DNA from: Adineta vaga
Taxonomy: Eukaryota > Animalia > Rotifera
Direction: 5' to 3'
Assembly (NCBI GenBank): GCA_021613535.1
Contig: CP075496.1
Coordinates: 620,001-684,000 of the forward strand
Length of the DNA: 64,000 nt
The translations under genes and the position numbers were made by a program. Positions 48,216 through 58,721 of the stretch are shown here, in pieces (position 1 is the first letter of the stretch; each line of letters opens with the position of its first letter). Under the pieces are notes generated by a model. The model was given only the letters and a program-made list of their open reading frames with translations, was not told where the DNA came from and searched no databases.

Positions 48216-49605
48216 ATGCATCTTCATATTTCTTTAATCATTTGTTTTGCATTATCGATTGTTTCAAGTCGTAATTTTGAACGAAAGAAAGGTTCCATTT
48301 TATCTGAAAGTTTTATCAATCGTATAAATCAAGCTCAAACAAAATGGGTAGCTGGACCAAATAAATTTCAAAATTGGTCAAAATCTTCAATTAAACGATT
48401 GATGGGTGTTCTTCCTGATCATTTTGTTCAAATAAAACATCTTGATCCATTGATTCATGAAGTTCCCAATGATTTACCAACAAATTTTGATGCACGAGAA
48501 CAATGGCCAAATTGTTCAACAATCAAAGAAGTTCGTGATCAAGGAAGGTTTGATAAAATACCAAAATGAGAAAAATTTTCAAGAAATAATCGAGTTTTTA
48601 CTTTAGTTGTGGAAGTTGTTGGGCATTTGGTGCTGTTGAAGCCATGTCTGATCGTATTTGTATTGCATCAAATGGTCAAAAAAATGCACATATATCAGCT
48701 GAAGATCTTGTTTGTATGTTTAAGTTTGAATATATATATAAATATACAAAATATTTTCTTTTCTTTTCTTCAGCATGTTGTTTATTATGTGGACAAGGTT
48801 GTAATGGAGGTTTTCCAACTGCTGCTTGGAATCATTATCGATTTACGGGATTAGTTACTGGTGGAAATTATAATTCGAAAGAAGGTTGTGAACCATATAC
48901 AATTGCTTCATGTGATCATCAGTAAGTTTAAAAATAAAAGTTGAAAATTAAACAAATTTATTTGTTATTTTAGTGTCAATGGAACTCTTCCACCAGTAAA
49001 TTTGTTTTATTTATCAAAAGAAAATATATTTTCTTTATTGTAGTGTCAAGGTGAAGAACCAACACCACATTGTAGTCGTAAATGTATTGATGGTTATCCA
49101 ACACCATTTGATCAAGATAAACATCACGGTAAAAGTGTTTACTCAGTAAAATCTCAACAAGAACAGATTCAAACTGAAATTATGAAAAATGGACCTGTTG
49201 AAGGAGCTTTTTCAGTTTATGCTGATTTTCTTGCTTATAAATCCGGTGTTTATCAACATACAGCTGGTTCGTTTCTTGGTGGTCATGGTATGTTCAACAT
49301 TTCTTTTTCTTTTTTCTGTTTGAATAAATCAGAAGAATTCAAAACAAAGACAAATTTTATTTGATTTTTATTTTTAGCAATTAAAATTCTTGGTTGGGGT
49401 GTTGAAAACTCCAGTCCATATTGGCTTGTTGCTAATTGTAAGTTGAGATATTTTCGAGAGAAACAAAAAAACCACGAAATTTATTTTTATTATTTTAAAA
49501 GCATGGAATGAAGATTGGGGTGATAAAGGTTTCTTTAAAATTCTTCGTGGTTCTGATGAATGTGGAATTGAAAGTGGTATTGTTGCTGGTGAACCCAAAC
49601 TTTAA
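48216..49605 (+). CDS. CTSB: Cathepsin B
   Basis: [45 protein letters not shown], occluding loop [40 protein letters not shown]. Confidence 0.95.
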
Positions 49606-51619: not shown

Positions 51620-52565
51620 CTATTGAGTATTATTAGAAATGACTTTTTGATTTATGTTTTGGATAAAATCATCAGCGCTATCAAAAACAGGTTTCCAATA
51701 TTGATTCATATTTTGATTCAGCGATTCATTGAATTGTCTTCGTATAGGTTCTACATCTTGTTTGTCACGAATAGCTGTCCAGATATTTTCAATATATTGT
51801 TCATATTTCGTTAATATATCATCCAATGATTCTTCCATGCGCTTGGCAATTTCCGTACTTAATCTCAATAATTCTCTATAATTTTCTGAACGAATTCGAT
51901 AAGTCTCTGGATCTTCCTGTTCCATTGCAGGATTTGGTCTTGCTGAAAGTATTGTTTGTTGAAAGTTCTCAATGTTTTCCAATAGCTCACGTTTAAAATT
52001 CTCCAAATTATTCGTGACATATTGTTCAATATCCTTGTCTGCTACTTCAGATGTTGAATTTTTACTTCGAATCCAATTCATGATTTTATTACCACCAGAT
52101 GATGCTCGTTCTTGTAATCTGAGAATTAATGTTGGAAGTTTTTTCTCATTTTGATCTTGAACTATTGTTAGAGTCCTCTACAAGAAAAAACACATTTAGA
52201 AAAATACCTTGTTAATAACGACAGTTTTATTGTCTTACGATTTTCAACAGAATTTTGGTAGCCTTTCCTCTTACATCACGCATAAGAATATTATATGAAT
52301 AGGACTCCGATATTATTTAGATTAACTTGTGAGAATCGGAAAAAACTTAAGATGGGATTAGAGATCTTTTTTAAATTAAATCTATTAACATTTACTCACG
52401 AAGTACAAAAGAACACTAGAAAACAACTTACGCTAGCGTAGTTTTGATTAGTAGCTTGATTTGACGATGACGGTTCTTTCTACAAAAAAATATATCAATA
52501 TTAAGAATGAACAATAAAATGCTTCTTAATACCTGAGAATCTCCAGCTGAATTTTGAGAAGCCAT
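51620..52565 (-). CDS. Gene B: unknown all-helical protein (exons 52565-52533, 52479-52432, 52177-51620)
   Basis: Phase-0 GT-AG introns and a clear paralog at 57936-58721 with the same exon structure (NLENF.REL..NIE.FQQ..LSARPNPAM...RMEESL.DILT.YEQYIE.IW.AI). Confidence 0.85.
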
Positions 52566-52664
52566 TTTGTCAATAAAATCGATCTGAAACACAAAAGTAA
52601 TTAAGCCTAGAAGCATAGAATCTGGTTTTATTTATGTGGAATAATGTTTATAGAAATGAATCAA

Positions 52665-53102
52665 TTAGAAAAAAAGTCTAATGACAGTTCTGAAAGCATT
52701 TTGAATTTTTTCAAGAATGCGATCAACTTCTTCACAGATCCATTCGATAATTTCTCGAACAATATCGAGTACTTTATCAAATATATTTCGAATCCAACCT
52801 CGAAGTCTCTCCATGCCTTCGTCTGCATATCGAAGAAGTTCACGGTAATCATCCTTTTCTTTTTGTGAAGCATTTGAATCAGGTCGTCTACTAAGAATTC
52901 GACTTTTAATCCCGTCAAGACGATCGAGGGTAGCATTTTTTGTTTCATTCACTGGCCGGATAAATTCAGCTTCTTCATCGCTGAATCGGTTTCTAGTCTT
53001 TGCTTGTTGCGCCATCGATGTCATTGTATTCTGCAGTCTATCAATACTCTCTGAAGTATTGCTTTTGAAATCTGCTGTTGCTTCATCAAATATTGAGGCC
53101 AT
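52665..53102 (-). CDS. Gene A: 145-aa unknown helical protein with a long amphipathic C-terminus
   Basis: Single coding exon, ungapped paralog at 57392-57829, and a 5'UTR intron (GTAAGT at 53152, AG|ACCATG). Confidence 0.85.
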   Translation of the reverse strand: MASIFDEATADFKSNTSESIDRLQNTMTSMAQQAKTRNRFSDEEAEFIRPVNETKNATLDRLDGIKSRILSRRPDSNASQKEKDDYRELLRYADEGMERLRGWIRNIFDKVLDIVREIIEWICEEVDRILEKIQNAFRTVIRLFF

Positions 53103-53199
53103 GGTCTTAAAATATATATACTATATTGTACATTCAAAAGTTCCAAACTTACTTTGTATCGTAGAATAAAATTCAATTGGAAAATGTTGGTTGACAAGA

Positions 53200-53230
53200 T
53201 TAATGATTTGAAGAACGTGTTTTTTTATAT
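53200..53230 (-). promoter_or_regulatory. Candidate core promoter of the A-B unit (TATAAAA followed by TCATT)
   Basis: The minus strand reads TATAAAAAAACACGTTCTTCAAATCATT, about 50 nt before the 5'UTR donor. Confidence 0.4.
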
Positions 53231-53405
53231 CACAATAAATAAATAACAAAAGTTTTCGTGGATTCAGTTGAATGGAAAAATCTGTAATAGAGATTTTCAA
53301 CAGACATCTGTGCCATCAAAATCTGTTATCTGACGTGAATATTTCAAAATAACACAGTCAAGATATACTATTTAATGCTTCTAACGAATAATAATTCGTC
53401 ATTTC

Positions 53406-53899
53406 TAGGAGTACACATAGTTCAGTTCACGAACCGGTTCAAATGAGCTGAAGAACTGGTCACAACAGTTCAGTTCGCATGAACTGAACTTTGCAAACAG
53501 ATCACCAGAAAGAGCTGAACCTACTTCAACGGTTCAGTTTAAGTGAACTAAACTAAATTGACAGTTCAGGTGAACGAACTGAACCTTTTGAACAGTTCGC
53601 CTCATACGAACCGAATTTTATCAAGAATTCTTTTCGTAAAAACTCTTCGAAATTATTCCCAAAACCGAACAATATTACTCAATACCCGGACGTACAGTTC
53701 CCAAAATAGAATAAAACTGTTCTGTTCTGGGAATTATACTTCCGGGTATTAAGCAGTATTGTTCTGTTTCAGAAATAGCTTCGCAGAGCTCTTACGAAAA
53801 GAATTCTTGATAGAATTTCGTTCGTATGAGCTGAACTGTTCAAAAGGTTCAGTTCGTTCAGACGAGCTGTTTGCGCAGTTCAGTTTATGTGTACTCCTA
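53406..53899. mobile_element. hAT-like MITE
   Basis: TIR TAGGAGTACACATA / TATGTGTACTCCTA, 8-bp TSD GTCATTTC / GTCATTTA, many GTTCAGTTC/GAACTGAAC subterminal repeats and a long internal palindrome (about 53570-53860). Confidence 0.85.
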
Positions 53900-54254
53900 G
53901 TCATTTACTAATATTTGCTTTTTTCTTCTTGTATTTTGTATAATCATTATAAATTACACTATTCTCTAATGAGTAACCACGTAGGATATCCTAGTATAAG
54001 ATTCGTGTTTTTTCTACTGAGATTCATCTGACGACCGATTCGAAGTAGATCTCGACGAGCTCTATTGATTTCAAATATTGCTTTTCTCAATACCTCTTTC
54101 TAGACTCCTGAAAAACTCAACATCTTCCAGAATACTTAAAGATGTGGATGAGTGCGAAGGAGCCATAGATATACTTACACACACCTTATCTGGAAATGAA
54201 GCTGATTCAGAGCATTACAGTCGACTGCGTGTTATATAGGGACAACGAGTGATT

Positions 54255-54550
54255 GTATATTATGTAAGTTAAGAAAGGAAAATACCAGACTTCGCCCAAG
54301 GCTAATGTGAAATTACCTATCATATTGCAACACACAAAGAAATGAATACAGGAAGAAAACATAAAAGAGCAACCTGGACGGCATCATTAATAACTATGTT
54401 TTTTCCCCTTGTATCACATATTTTTCGACATAATTATTTTATGTTACTTCTGTATTTATTTATCTGTCTATGAGTAACACGGTAGTAATTTCCTAATGAT
54501 TTTGTGTCGAAGATTATGGTATTTTCTTTTCTTAGTTCACGTCATATATA
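54255..54550. repeat. Old degenerate foldback element
   Basis: TAAGAAAGGAAAATACCA...GAAATTAC...AATACAG...AACATAAAA is mirrored by TTTTATGTT...CTGTATT...GTAATTTC...TGGTATTTTCTTTTCTTA. Confidence 0.55.
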
Positions 54551-54810
54551 ATAACGCGATGTTTCTATTTAAAATGTCGTTGATTTTAACATTTCGAATA
54601 ACCAAGGAAACAGTATCCATACATTGACATATTCCGCAAAATCTAACGATGAAAATCAAAATGGAAACAAGCAATCAGGACAATAAACAATGTCCAAATC
54701 TATTCATAATTAAACTGGCAGTGGTAATGCCACTAATGGACAAACTGTAAGTAAAAGTAAATTACTCTTTTCTGCCGAATTTTTCTCATGATTTAAAATA
54801 ACTACTACTA

Positions 54811-56600
54811 CCCATAACGGAAAAATATTTAAGTCGCTACCGCTGAAGGACGCGATTGTGTCTTGAAAGATCGCGGTCCGCAAAATAAACCGCACTTGAC
54901 CGCGGTGTTTTTTATCGCAATATCGATTTAGCACCGTAAACTAGAACGAAACCGCGATGTTCACACCGTTGAATATCGCGGTTTCAGAAAAGCTTGATAA
55001 GACATAGATTAGTTGCGGTATTTGAGAATCACCATACATTACGATATTAAATTTTGCGAACTTTCTATTACAAACCGCTATCTCCTCATTATGTACGAAG
55101 ATATCATTGTTCTAAATGATTTCGTGTTAGTAATATGGTCATATTTTTTATGTGATTTTTGTCATAATGATATATCACAACAATTTCCATTCATATAATC
55201 ACAGTTAAATTTAAAAAAAGATATTTCTGATTGAAGTTAGACTCAGCTTTTTTCCATTGACTAATGAAATGAGATGAGATAAAAAGACTAGTTCTGTAAG
55301 TCAAATTGTGAAGAAATTATTAAACTAAATTCAAATAGACGTTATAGATTAATCTAATATTATATTGAGTGAAAATAGACATGAATACATCTTAAAGATA
55401 CTCAGGCAGACAAAATCGATAAAAAAAACGCGATTCACGAGAAAAAAACAACGTTCTTATGTTGGTTTTTTCTAACGAAACCTTTATTGACCACGTTACA
55501 AAATACACTTTCGTGTGCGTTCAAACGTTGTTATTACCTATTTTCTGTCGGGAAGAAAAAACATCGTTTATACAGGTACAAAAGTGTATTTTTTAGCACG
55601 GTAAATATACGTTTTGTTGGAAAAAAAACAATATAAGAACGTGGTTTTTTTCTCGCGAATCGTGTTTTTTTATCGATTTTGTCTGTCTGGGTATTAGTCA
55701 TATTTCGTTAAGATGATCATTTGTGACAATATGGTTATGAGATAGTAAAAGTTCAGAGATAAAAATAGACACAAATCTGTTTTTTCGACTGATGGAATCA
55801 AGATAAGTCTACCAAATAGTATTCTCATGCGTTCTGACGTACAAACCTACATATAGGCAGAACTGTAATAATATTTAAAATAGTTAGACTTTGTCGTAAC
55901 ACATGATAATGCAGTTCATCAACTAAAGATACTCATGAATGTACATTTGTCTCCAGAAATGATTCTATTTGAATAGATTGTGTTTATAGTTTAATCATCA
56001 TGACTATGAGTGATAAATAAGATTTTATATATATCCCGTATAGCACATCATCAACATGAATATCTCAGAAAATTTAATAAAATTATAAATGAGATATAAA
56101 TTATTAGGAATTATAAGATTCTTATAAATCCACTAATAAATGAAAAATATCAATCTAAATGAGAAGATATTTTATCGCTGATGAGATAAGGCTATCATAT
56201 CTGATATTAGTATGAACATCACCGGACGGTTAAATGGAATTAGTGGATTGCAATCACTCGATAAGAAGTTCGAATCTAATCAGAAGAAAATAAATAAAAA
56301 ATAGATAATGGTATTTAATGAATTGATCGAAGTGTTAAAGTATCATCTTAAGATAATGAATAGGTTACAAACATAGAAAAGTTAAAGATTACCACATAGA
56401 TGTCAGAAATAATATACCATCAATATGATGAATGTTTTTTTAAAAACCGTTAATAACCACGGTTTGAACATACGACGGTTTCGGGCGGTGTAGAAAAACC
56501 TAATAAAAGGTCTGCCTTTTTCGGTACAAAATCACGGTTCAAAACCGCAAGTAATAAACCGTTAATTACCGCGGTATTTATTGAAAAAATTTCCCGTGGG
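54811..56600. mobile_element. Possible non-autonomous CMC/EnSpm-like element in the intron of gene C
   Basis: Ends CCCATAACGGAAAAAT and ATTTCCCGTGGG, with clusters of ACCGCGG/AACCG subterminal repeats at 54835-54985 and 56445-56580. Confidence 0.4.
55401..55691. mobile_element. MITE with about 110-bp TIRs and TA flanks (C(T/C)CAG.CAGAC ends), nested in the previous element
   Basis: TA|CTCAGGCAGACAAAATCGATAAAAAAA versus TTTTTTATCGATTTTGTCTGTCTGGG|TA. Confidence 0.8.
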
Positions 56601-57391
56601 ACATTATGTATTCTTGTTTTATTGCAAAAAAGAATCGAATACACATAGAACGGTGTTTATGAACGAATTATTAAATACAACTTTATTCTAGCAAGTTTTG
56701 AAACTCATTGAACAAGTTAAACAACATTTACCAACTCTAATCTTTACATTAAAAAAGAAATCGATAGAAGAACAAGAAACATATATACTTCAAAATGTGG
56801 ATTCATTTCGTGACATGATTCTGAAACTTATTGAAGAGTTAAAAGAGCTTGTTTTGAGTGTACGTCCATCATCTGATACTATCAATGAACCCAACTACGA
56901 AGAACACAAAACAGCATATGGAGAATTACTCAAACTTGGAACAGCACTAATGGTCAGAATGGAAGATATTCTTAATAAAGTATTCGATGAATATATAAAG
57001 TTTCTTAATGAAGTAAGCCAAACAATTCGTGCTGATAATGATTCAACAGCTATTCTCGATGATTTTAATTGCAATATAGAAATGCATTTGAAACAATGCT
57101 GGGATCCTGTGTTTACTATGGCTAAAAGCTGAAAGACGATACTAACCAATTTAAAAAATCTAGTCAGGATAAACAGTAAACTTAGATTCGTATTATCGAT
57201 TAAACAAATGAAAAACATTTCCTTTCTCTGAAGTTAACTCTGTTTTAATAATCATTAATTTGTTTTATTCTAGATTAATTTATTGCTGGTGATCAAATAA
57301 AACTTAATTTTTCTCAACAGTTTCATTAAAGAAACTATTAAGTGAGTTCGGACTTCTTGAATACACTTTATAATAGTTATATTTTAGAATA

Positions 57392-57829
57392 ATGAACTTA
57401 ACATTCGACCAAGCAGAATCAGAACTGAAAAGTTCTATCCAAAGTGATATCAAAAAATTGCAGAACAAAGTGATATCCATGGCACAGAGAGGAAGGACAA
57501 ACAACGAGTTTGCTGCCGAAGAAGCGGCCTTTATACGACAAGTTAAGCGAACGAAAGACGCTGCATCCCAACGTTGCGACGATGCGCAAAAAATAGTTAC
57601 CAGTAAACGACCTTCTCCGAATGCTCCAGAAAGAGAAAAGGAGGATTATCGTACACTTCTTCGATATGCAAATGAAGGAATGAGCAGATTACAAGTTTGG
57701 ATTACAAATATTTTTAATCAACTCATTAATATTGTCAGACAGATCGTCGATTGGATCTGGGACAGTATTGTTGACATTGGAACAAGAATCGGAAGTGCTT
57801 TTAGAGATGTGATCGATCTTTTTTTCTAA
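57392..57829 (+). CDS. Gene A': paralog of gene A (145 aa)
   Basis: Same length as A, ungapped, about 70/145 identical by hand count. 5'UTR intron GTGAGT (57342)...TTTTAG|AATAATG. Confidence 0.85.
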   Translation: MNLTFDQAESELKSSIQSDIKKLQNKVISMAQRGRTNNEFAAEEAAFIRQVKRTKDAASQRCDDAQKIVTSKRPSPNAPEREKEDYRTLLRYANEGMSRLQVWITNIFNQLINIVRQIVDWIWDSIVDIGTRIGSAFRDVIDLFF

Positions 57830-57935
57830 AATATAAATAATTCGATACACATTTCACACGAATACAATGATCCCTTATTGTATTATTAAATTTTATTGTT
57901 TTGTCTTATATTCTAGATCGATTTTTATTTATAAT

Positions 57936-58721
57936 ATGGCTTCTCGAAATTATCAAGTAATAAAAATATATTATTTATTAGTTTTGACTTTTATTCTTGA
58001 AATCATTTGTTTAGAAAGAATTATCATCGACGAATCGACCTCAAACTACTAATCATCAAGGTTATGCCACTGTAAGTCATTTAACACGTTTACTGGATTA
58101 CAAAGAATGACATTATACTTACATTTTATTCACAAATACTTTGATATCGTTTTTATTTTCTTTTAGAAAACTTTAACAATAATCGAAGAGCAAAATCAAA
58201 AAAAAATTCCAACATTGATTCTAAAATTACAAAAAGAAACACCATCTAGTGGCAGTAGGATCAAGAATTTCTTTCAACGTAGACGAGTAAAATCTACTGG
58301 ATTCTCAGAAAACGAACTTGAAGAACATATCCATGCTAATCTGGAAAATTTTAATAGAGAACTATCGAGAAATATAGAAGACTTTCAACAAATTGTTCTT
58401 TCGGCACGACCAAATCCGGCAATGCAAGATCGAGATCCAGAAGGATATCGAATTCATGCCGACAATTACAAACAGTTTTTAAACTTAGCTACTGAAATTA
58501 TCAAGCGTATGGAGGAATCATTGAATGATATATTAACACAATATGAGCAATATATCGAAAGTATCTGGATAGCTATTTGTCAAAAACAAGATATACGAGT
58601 CGTTCAAAGACAGTTTGATCAAGCTATAAAGGACAATATGAATCGACACTGGAACCCGGTTTTTAATCGTGCTGATCGTTTGATTGAAGACATCAATTCA
58701 ACAACTAATTCGAAGTATTAA
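57936..58721 (+). CDS. Gene B': paralog of gene B (exons 57936-57956, 58015-58071, 58167-58721)
   Basis: Same three-exon, phase-0 structure and the same motifs as B. Confidence 0.85.

Follow-up and report, generated by a model that had tools for sequence, protein, structure and literature searches.

A compact cluster of five related genes was found between positions 51,620 and 58,721 of a 64,000-nucleotide (nt) stretch of the genome of the bdelloid rotifer Adineta vaga (GenBank assembly GCA_021613535.1, contig CP075496.1, positions 620,001 to 684,000 of the forward strand). The whole stretch is referred to below as the window, and positions are counted from its first letter. Two of the genes, A and A', encode proteins of one type, and the other three, B, B' and C, encode proteins of another; A is followed by B on the minus strand and A' by B' on the plus strand (Table 1). 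The G+C content of the region is ~28-33%. The open reading frames (ORFs) of the window were checked against the coordinates given by an earlier sequence-only reading of the same DNA, and all were found where that reading had placed them.

Table 1. Genes and other features of the cluster (window coordinates; aa, amino acids; UTR, untranslated region)
Feature	Position	Strand	Description	Basis
Gene A	52665..53102	-	One coding exon, 145 aa, A-type	ORF
Putative 5'-UTR intron of A	53106..53152	-	47 nt, GTAAGT...AG, ends 3 nt before the ATG	Sequence only
A-to-B spacer	52566..52664	-	99 nt	Motifs conserved across cassettes and two other Adineta contigs
Gene B	51620..52578	-	212 aa, B-type, three exons	RNA contigs
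Gene C	54661..57132	+	Third B-type gene	Public 167-aa model P0017
Gene A'	57392..57829	+	145 aa, A-type	ORF
Putative 5'-UTR intron of A'	57342..57387	+	46 nt, GT..AG	Read from sequence alone
A'-to-B' spacer	57830..57935	+	106 nt	Spacer alignment, sequence
Gene B'	57936..58721	+	210 aa, B-type, three exons	Sequence, public model P0012
Non-coding repeat	54817..56600	.	~1.8 kb, transposable-element-like, insertion that separates A from the main exon of C	

Gene B is transcribed and spliced. The RNA data were Logan assembled contigs of four runs listed as probable RNA. Both GT-AG joints of B (52177/52432 and 52479/52533, minus strand) were present in RNA contigs of runs X1 and X2, which come from two studies, and the spliced joints indicate that the material is indeed RNA. 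The three exons of B (from at least 52578 to 52533, with the ATG at 52565; 52479-52432; 52177-51620) are joined in phase 0, and the length of the product equals that of the orthologs P0002 and P0004. One RNA contig is collinear with the genome through exon 1 and the ATG up to 52578, where it ends 5 nt short of the predicted exon start, without extra letters. In B', splice sites read from the sequence yield exons 57936-57956, 58015-58071 and 58167-58721, a model identical to the public P0012. The start codons proposed earlier for B (52565) and B' (57936) are right. The main exon of C occupies 56692-57132, and the first exon of its public model P0017 (54661-54723) lies 2 kb upstream. The putative 5'-UTR intron of A would imply a short leader exon upstream of 53153. 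Two further RNA contigs deserve mention: one from run X4 (95-99% alike) omits 57 nt in frame within the last exon of B (51688-51746), which could represent a divergent allele or an alternative splice; the other, 3.8 kb long with 18-24-nt matches in the spacer between A and C, was rejected as spurious, its coordinates being inconsistent with the strand.

A and A' are identical at 70 of 145 positions (48%) and align end to end without gaps (E 3e-49), while the last exons of B and B' share 55% identity over 140 aa, also ungapped, and C is 31% identical to B (E 6e-19). Pairwise similarity of A to B is weak (27% over 67 aa, E 2e-5); the A-type and B-type profiles align over 87 columns (hhalign, 96.8%, E 2.7e-10), and in the merged alignment an Arg-Pro is invariant and a Tyr nearly so. 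The two types are true distant homologs, and by profile a helix, an Arg/Lys-Pro loop, an aromatic residue and a long helix are common across the core of the family. For B, searches used either the last exon or the full-length public models P0004 and P0012. Since no Pfam, PDB or fold match rose above threshold, the family is unnamed. When A, A', B, B' and C were scanned against Pfam, no family came near its threshold, and the PDB sequence search with three profiles returned only sub-threshold apolipoprotein and designed-bundle matches. Foldseek comparison of the A model with the PDB gave spectrin repeats and designed three-helix bundles (best E 0.086), and a wide VIA-align search gave generic helical bundles throughout, with a best Z of 11.8, under the level (~13) below which the tool advises caution for helical proteins. 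The ESM Atlas shape search with the B model reached a TM-score of at most 0.47; in the feature search the top rows were unnamed 'hypothetical protein' clusters, accompanied by one chance-level IL-32 row. A 194-aa Atlas cluster, ranked second for A and first for the snail family member P0110, may simply be the one to which P0110 itself belongs. A literature search by accession numbers and topic brought up no paper that deals with these proteins. The sequence-only reading had anticipated the equal length and ungapped ~48% identity of A and A', the distant homology of A and B, and the lack of a recognised named family, and on each of these points it was borne out.

Profile searches over the whole A. 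vaga assembly (100.8 Mb, six contigs) identified 13 loci: five in the window (contig C4), six in a 5.5-kb cluster on contig C1, a B-type gene at a distance of 20 kb from that cluster, and a lone A-type locus on C2. The C1 cluster consists of three A-type and three B-type genes, interleaved, with two identical A copies. The layout B'-A'-C / A-B is found again in full in the Adineta contig L017 and partially in A. steineri (L016). In the latter, B' could not be placed, and only fragments of A and A' are present, next to a gap in the assembly. A bioreactor metagenome contig contains one A-B pair, Rotaria magnacalcarata has the order A-B-A on one strand within 1.9 kb, and in Didymodactylos A and B are 7.5 kb apart on a 17-kb contig. 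In a quick maximum-likelihood tree of 139 sequences, an A clade (62 rows, SH-aLRT 97) and a B clade (56 rows, SH-aLRT 96) were resolved, with ~21 non-bdelloid or unassigned rows placed next to A. Within these clades A and A' are sisters, as are B and B', and C and the C1 copies fall into other subclades; the A-B pair was thus copied as a unit. The earlier claim that the pairs are old and have stayed linked holds across species (L017, L016, Rotaria and Didymodactylos). As for their adjacency in other rotifers, A and B are neighbouring or linked in Adineta, Rotaria and Didymodactylos, but not always, given the two A. vaga genes that have no partner in the flank examined.

The family is not confined to rotifers. 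A word-indexed search retrieved only close Adineta-like relatives; a HMMER search with the merged profile against 1.84 billion representatives retrieved 217 clusters at E<=1e-3 and 102 at E<=1e-10. Named members come from three bdelloid families (A. vaga, A. steineri, Rotaria magnacalcarata, Rotaria sp. Silwood and Didymodactylos carnosus), from snails (Pomacea canaliculata and Batillaria attramentaria) and from Glomeromycotina (Funneliformis mosseae, Ambispora gerdemannii and Diversispora epigaea); a single Coleochaete transcriptome entry may be contamination. The non-bdelloid proteins belong to a single, well-conserved type marked by APKKP, FFxxLWNWIK and an LF at the C-terminus, and this single type of snails and fungi is ancestral-looking. 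Its genes in Pomacea and Batillaria are intronless and located on megabase scaffolds. The match of the outgroup profile to A (98.1%) spans 105 columns and takes in the hydrophobic Trp-rich helix, and its match to B (98.8%) spans 155 columns and takes in the N-terminal motif PTL(I/V)LRLQ, so that each subtype retains a different ancestral feature. No relative was detected among viral contigs searched with the outgroup profile. A single-type member, P0125, is also carried by the gene-dense 11-kb metagenome contig L020 (47% G+C), where its neighbours are genes of the ankyrin-repeat, trypsin-like and 3CxxC zinc-ribbon kinds, along with many ORFs that fall into no family.

Ratios of nonsynonymous to synonymous substitution rates (dN/dS), the check suggested along with the first description of the cluster, were calculated between orthologs by NG86. 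The values were 0.26-0.33 for A (orthologs 79-83% identical), 0.68 for A' (ortholog in L017), 0.32-0.52 for B, 0.49 for B' and 0.77-0.87 for C. A and B are constrained yet fast-evolving, and both are under purifying selection. Gene C had been described as decaying; however, its frame is open in three Adineta genomes, including L017 and L016, a public model exists, and its dN/dS points to weak, nearly absent constraint with no visible decay. The repeat at 54817-56600 sits inside the annotated intron of C and does not belong to the gene family. It recurs at no fewer than 20 separate loci on other chromosomes (C1, C3 and C5) with ~73-94% identity, and looks like a non-autonomous transposable element. 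The equivalent A-C spacers measure ~2 kb in L017 and ~0.7 kb in L016, the spacer of the window being inflated by this repeat.

According to the AlphaFold2 models, A (predicted local distance difference test, pLDDT, 75) folds into helices 2-33 and 40-70 and one long helix 80-144, whereas in B (pLDDT 72) an N-terminal helix, predicted weakly, precedes helices 47-77, 90-137, 143-160 and 162-184. The hydrophobic moment of A residues 91-145 is 0.6-0.75 throughout. In hydropathy windows B is less hydrophobic than A, no segment comes near transmembrane hydrophobicity, and A, A', B and B' all begin with hydrophilic residues, as is also apparent by eye. The long amphipathic C-terminal helix of A, the more hydrophilic nature of B and the lack of a signal peptide had all been noted before, and the present results agree.

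When A and B were modelled together with ESMFold2, the interface score ipSAE was 0.83, 0.83 and 0.82, against 0.02 for the best of three controls, with 174-176 confident contacts, contact agreement between runs of at least 76% and a partner pLDDT of at least 79. Among eukaryotic pairs, 39 of 65 novel solved ones attained this mark, as did two of 126 unrelated ones. The model supports the prediction that A and B bind each other. The predicted interface involves A residues 39-73 and 85-123 and B residues 50-83, 96-137 and 142-175; the first two thirds of the long A helix would be buried against B, the last 22 residues (124-145) remaining free. Of the 'obligate heteromeric pair' proposed by the sequence-only reading, the heteromer is favoured by this model, while the word 'obligate' is too strong in view of the A and B genes that have no partner in the flank examined and of the single type of snails and fungi.

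The spacers between the paired genes share several elements. The A-B spacer contains an AATAAA (~52627-52632) and a pyrimidine tract with an AG (52585-52584), which is followed by ATCGATTTT 18 nt before the ATG of B; in the A'-B' spacer, a conserved acceptor AG at 57915-57916 is followed by ATCGATTTTT. Five aligned spacers, from both paralogous cassettes and two other Adineta contigs, have in common an AATAAA-like signal and an acceptor in which YAG precedes ATCGATTTT, 18-20 nt before the ATG. This motif has been retained between cassettes with a synonymous divergence (dS) of ~0.7-0.8 whose proteins are only 48-55% identical. Genes on one strand, short spacers, a polyadenylation (poly(A)) signal and a 3' splice acceptor make up the layout of a spliced-leader operon, and rotifers reportedly use spliced-leader trans-splicing. 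The conserved ~100-nt spacer with its poly(A)-like signal and acceptor suggests that A and B are expressed from one transcription unit, in which case the acceptor of B would be explained equally well by trans-splicing or by alternative use of a shared cis-spliced leader exon.

Several observations concern the surroundings of the family members. In the window, upstream of the cluster, positions 49182-49364 contain an ORF fragment that by eye resembles a papain-family (cathepsin-like) cysteine protease, and positions 53546-53885 form a near-perfect palindrome of two 166-nt arms, 80% complementary and 8 nt apart; a related copy of the latter is present on C3, so that it resembles a miniature inverted-repeat transposable element. 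Directly after the unpaired A-type gene of C2 (~898.3 kb), a 218-aa ORF with a zinc-protease-like HExxHxxGxxH motif was found (L005, 2069-2725), for which there was no Pfam match at E<=0.01. In A. steineri (L019, 6001-8747) an A-type fragment and a B-type gene are preceded by an ORF resembling ADP-ribosyltransferases (ART), whose PF01129 score of 22.0 bits falls short of the cut-off of 22.3, and the start of the ORF at 7752 of L019 resembles by eye the N-terminus of an ADP-ribosylglycohydrolase. In Pomacea canaliculata (L022, 1-5528) a PARP-domain gene adjoins the family member. These two ADP-ribosyl-transferase neighbours may be a coincidence. The public 418-aa ART-B fusion P0078 was considered as a clue to function and rejected: it skips the intervening A-type gene and crosses an assembly gap, and is therefore probably an annotation artefact.

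Taken together, these data can be read as follows. The five genes of the window belong to a fast-evolving family of small, cytosolic, all-helical proteins that in bdelloids comprises two paralogous subtypes. The A type (~145 aa) lacks the ancestral N-terminal motif, which it has lost, and retains one long amphipathic helix rich in Trp, Ile and Phe, whereas the B type (~210 aa) retains the N-terminal PTL(I/V)LRLQ, hydrophilic C-terminal helices replacing the hydrophobic one. The A and B genes, adjacent on one strand and duplicated as a pair, may be expressed from a single transcription unit via spliced-leader trans-splicing or a shared leader exon. Helices 2 and 3 of each chain are predicted to pack into one shared bundle, a heterodimer that most likely would derive from a self-associating single-type ancestor like that of snails and Glomeromycotina. 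We regard this scheme as a whole, a heterodimeric helical bundle from linked and possibly co-transcribed genes with such an ancestor, as the best-supported reading and as an even call. The likeliest activity, in view of the recurrent sub-threshold apolipoprotein matches and the long amphipathic helix, would be for the pair to attach reversibly to the surface of membranes or lipids by way of the A helix, B being the soluble partner; this is conceivable, though on balance doubtful. A stronger version, in which the two genes are transcribed together, as an operon or from a shared leader exon, and encode an obligate heterodimer that arose through complementary degeneration of a self-associating ancestor, A being membrane-active and B its soluble keeper, and in which the scattered taxonomic range (bdelloids, caenogastropod snails and Glomeromycotina) stems from horizontal transfer between eukaryotes, seems unlikely.

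Certain findings weigh against the heterodimer scheme, and most of them favour a rival view, that A and B are plain tandem paralogs which act independently, singly or as homo-oligomers in the manner of the single-type ancestor, their adjacency being a by-product of local duplication. The three tandem single-type copies in Batillaria demonstrate that clustering alone can stem from tandem duplication. In A. vaga, the A-type gene on C2 has no partner within the ~1.5 kb of flank examined, nor has the B-type gene at C1:14.032 Mb within ~4 kb, and orientations in the C1 cluster are mixed. The complex test does not separate an A-B heterodimer from homodimers, and close cousins of a true partner pass it as well. 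In the RNA contigs of the four runs, A, C and the start of A' are left uncovered, and RNA of B without RNA of A is not what simple co-transcription predicts; however, the depth over B is only ~5 and contigs show presence rather than absence, so the missing A RNA is weak evidence that A is silent. Lipid action in particular is made less compelling by the fact that any helix of a bundle is amphipathic. On the other hand, independent paralogs do not readily account for the near-equal size of the A and B clades (62 and 56 clusters), the interleaving of A and B in three bdelloid families, the sister relationships that imply duplication of the pair, the loss of complementary ancestral features by A and B, or the conservation of a non-coding spacer across a deep duplication. 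Independent tandem paralogs are a serious alternative, albeit a rather unlikely one.

The remaining alternatives differ in the function assigned to the proteins. Nothing tested lends support to the YaxAB-like toxin, the toxin-antidote pair or the desiccation protectant put forward by the sequence-only reading. Intracellular apolipoprotein-like or stress proteins, i.e., exchangeable bundles of amphipathic helices that would open at the surface of membranes or lipid droplets, for instance during desiccation, and that need no heterodimer, would fit the weak apolipoprotein matches obtained with all three profiles (ApoA-I, E 0.019, and ApoA-IV, E 0.0044 and 5.6e-5, in the PDB profile search) and the Pfam matches to Apolipoprotein, ApoLp-III and YtxH in several outgroup members (E ~2e-4). 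All of these are far below the curated cut-offs, the outgroup members scoring 21.4 bits against 90 for PF01442 and 17.8 against 36.3 for PF07464, and at E<=10 neither family appears among the Pfam matches of A, A', B, B' or C. Moreover, the matches cover only the charged N-terminal helices and so probably reflect amphipathic periodicity, a secretion signal is lacking, and snails and arbuscular mycorrhizal fungi carry the family yet are not anhydrobiotes; we consider this explanation improbable. A further alternative, modelled on YaxAB/XaxAB, is a bipartite alpha-helical toxin or immune effector that forms pores: B would keep A soluble until both come together on a target membrane, and the A helix would line the pore. 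In its favour are the long Trp-rich amphipathic helix and its weak match to a designed pentameric coiled coil (E 0.085, A helix profile, PDB sequence search), fast evolution (dN/dS 0.3-0.9), lineage-specific expansion (>100 clusters) and the patchy taxonomic range. The proteins, however, have hydrophilic N-termini and neither a signal peptide nor a segment of transmembrane character, and at 145-212 aa they are much smaller than YaxA and YaxB (roughly 400 aa). Fold matches to YaxB (Z 8.6, root-mean-square deviation 5.1, 126 residues aligned, rank 29 among generic bundles) and ClyA (Z 9.3) are found among hundreds of unrelated helical chains, below the caution level and within helical-bundle noise, and most of the helix supposed to line the pore is buried against B in the complex model. 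With the sizes wrong and the fold scores uninformative, the analogy to YaxAB/XaxAB drawn earlier is not supported, and a pore former is quite improbable. In the case of an effector with its cognate inhibitor, A would be harmful alone and B would neutralise it. Tight linkage, the extensive predicted interface and the ART-like and PARP-domain genes adjoining the A. steineri pair and the Pomacea homolog are compatible with such a role, whereas the homology of A and B to each other and to a single-type ancestor would be unusual for such pairs, no enzyme motif is present, the invariant residues being only the Arg/Lys-Pro loop and one aromatic, and the apparent ART fusion is probably artefactual. 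We deem this role highly improbable.

The family has neither a name nor a Pfam model, yet its sequence clusters number over 200, and it has undergone expansion in bdelloids. If the A-B heterodimer is real, it would be a clean natural case of the transition from a homomer to a heteromer of paralogs, with the single-type ancestor extant in other phyla, and the conserved spacer would offer a concrete case of co-transcribed bdelloid genes. The odd taxonomic range is a question in itself, because all three groups inhabit soil and freshwater sediments. At present, the practical value of the pair is as a well-defined target for expression, pull-down and lipid-binding work.

Comparison with known systems places these features in context. 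As in spliced-leader operons of the nematode type, same-strand genes lie ~100 nt apart, with a poly(A) signal and then a 3' acceptor just before the downstream ATG; the difference is that the assembled RNA contigs showed neither a spliced leader nor a polycistronic RNA, the B contig ending short of the acceptor. YaxAB/XaxAB and ClyA are likewise all-helical, have two components in the case of YaxAB and insert into membranes by amphipathic helices, but they are ~350-400 aa long and possess a long coiled-coil stalk with a head or foot domain; no sequence match to YaxAB/XaxAB was found in the Pfam scan or the PDB sequence searches. The exchangeable apolipoproteins (ApoA-I/A-IV, apolipophorin III) share proline-punctuated amphipathic helices and a helix-bundle resting state and give the best, though sub-threshold, profile matches; they are, however, secreted and built of 11/22-mer repeats, and the proteins described here have no such repeat and, judging from their N-termini by eye and in hydropathy windows, no signal peptide. 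Finally, with regard to EsxA/EsxB (WXG100) and PE/PPE, no PF06013 match was obtained at E<=10, only chance-level YwqH-like (E 0.18) and DUF5344 (E 0.24) matches, and the sole structural row related to type VII secretion was EspA/EspE (TM-score 0.41, ESM Atlas shape search). Those proteins are bacterial and secreted, and they have a WxG turn and a YxxxD/E signal that the present family lacks, its loop motif being Arg/Lys-Pro. The likeness to EsxAB is an analogy and not membership, one of small all-helical paralogs encoded by adjacent genes, whose helical hairpins form a heterodimeric bundle and whose genes duplicate as a unit, much as is proposed for A and B.

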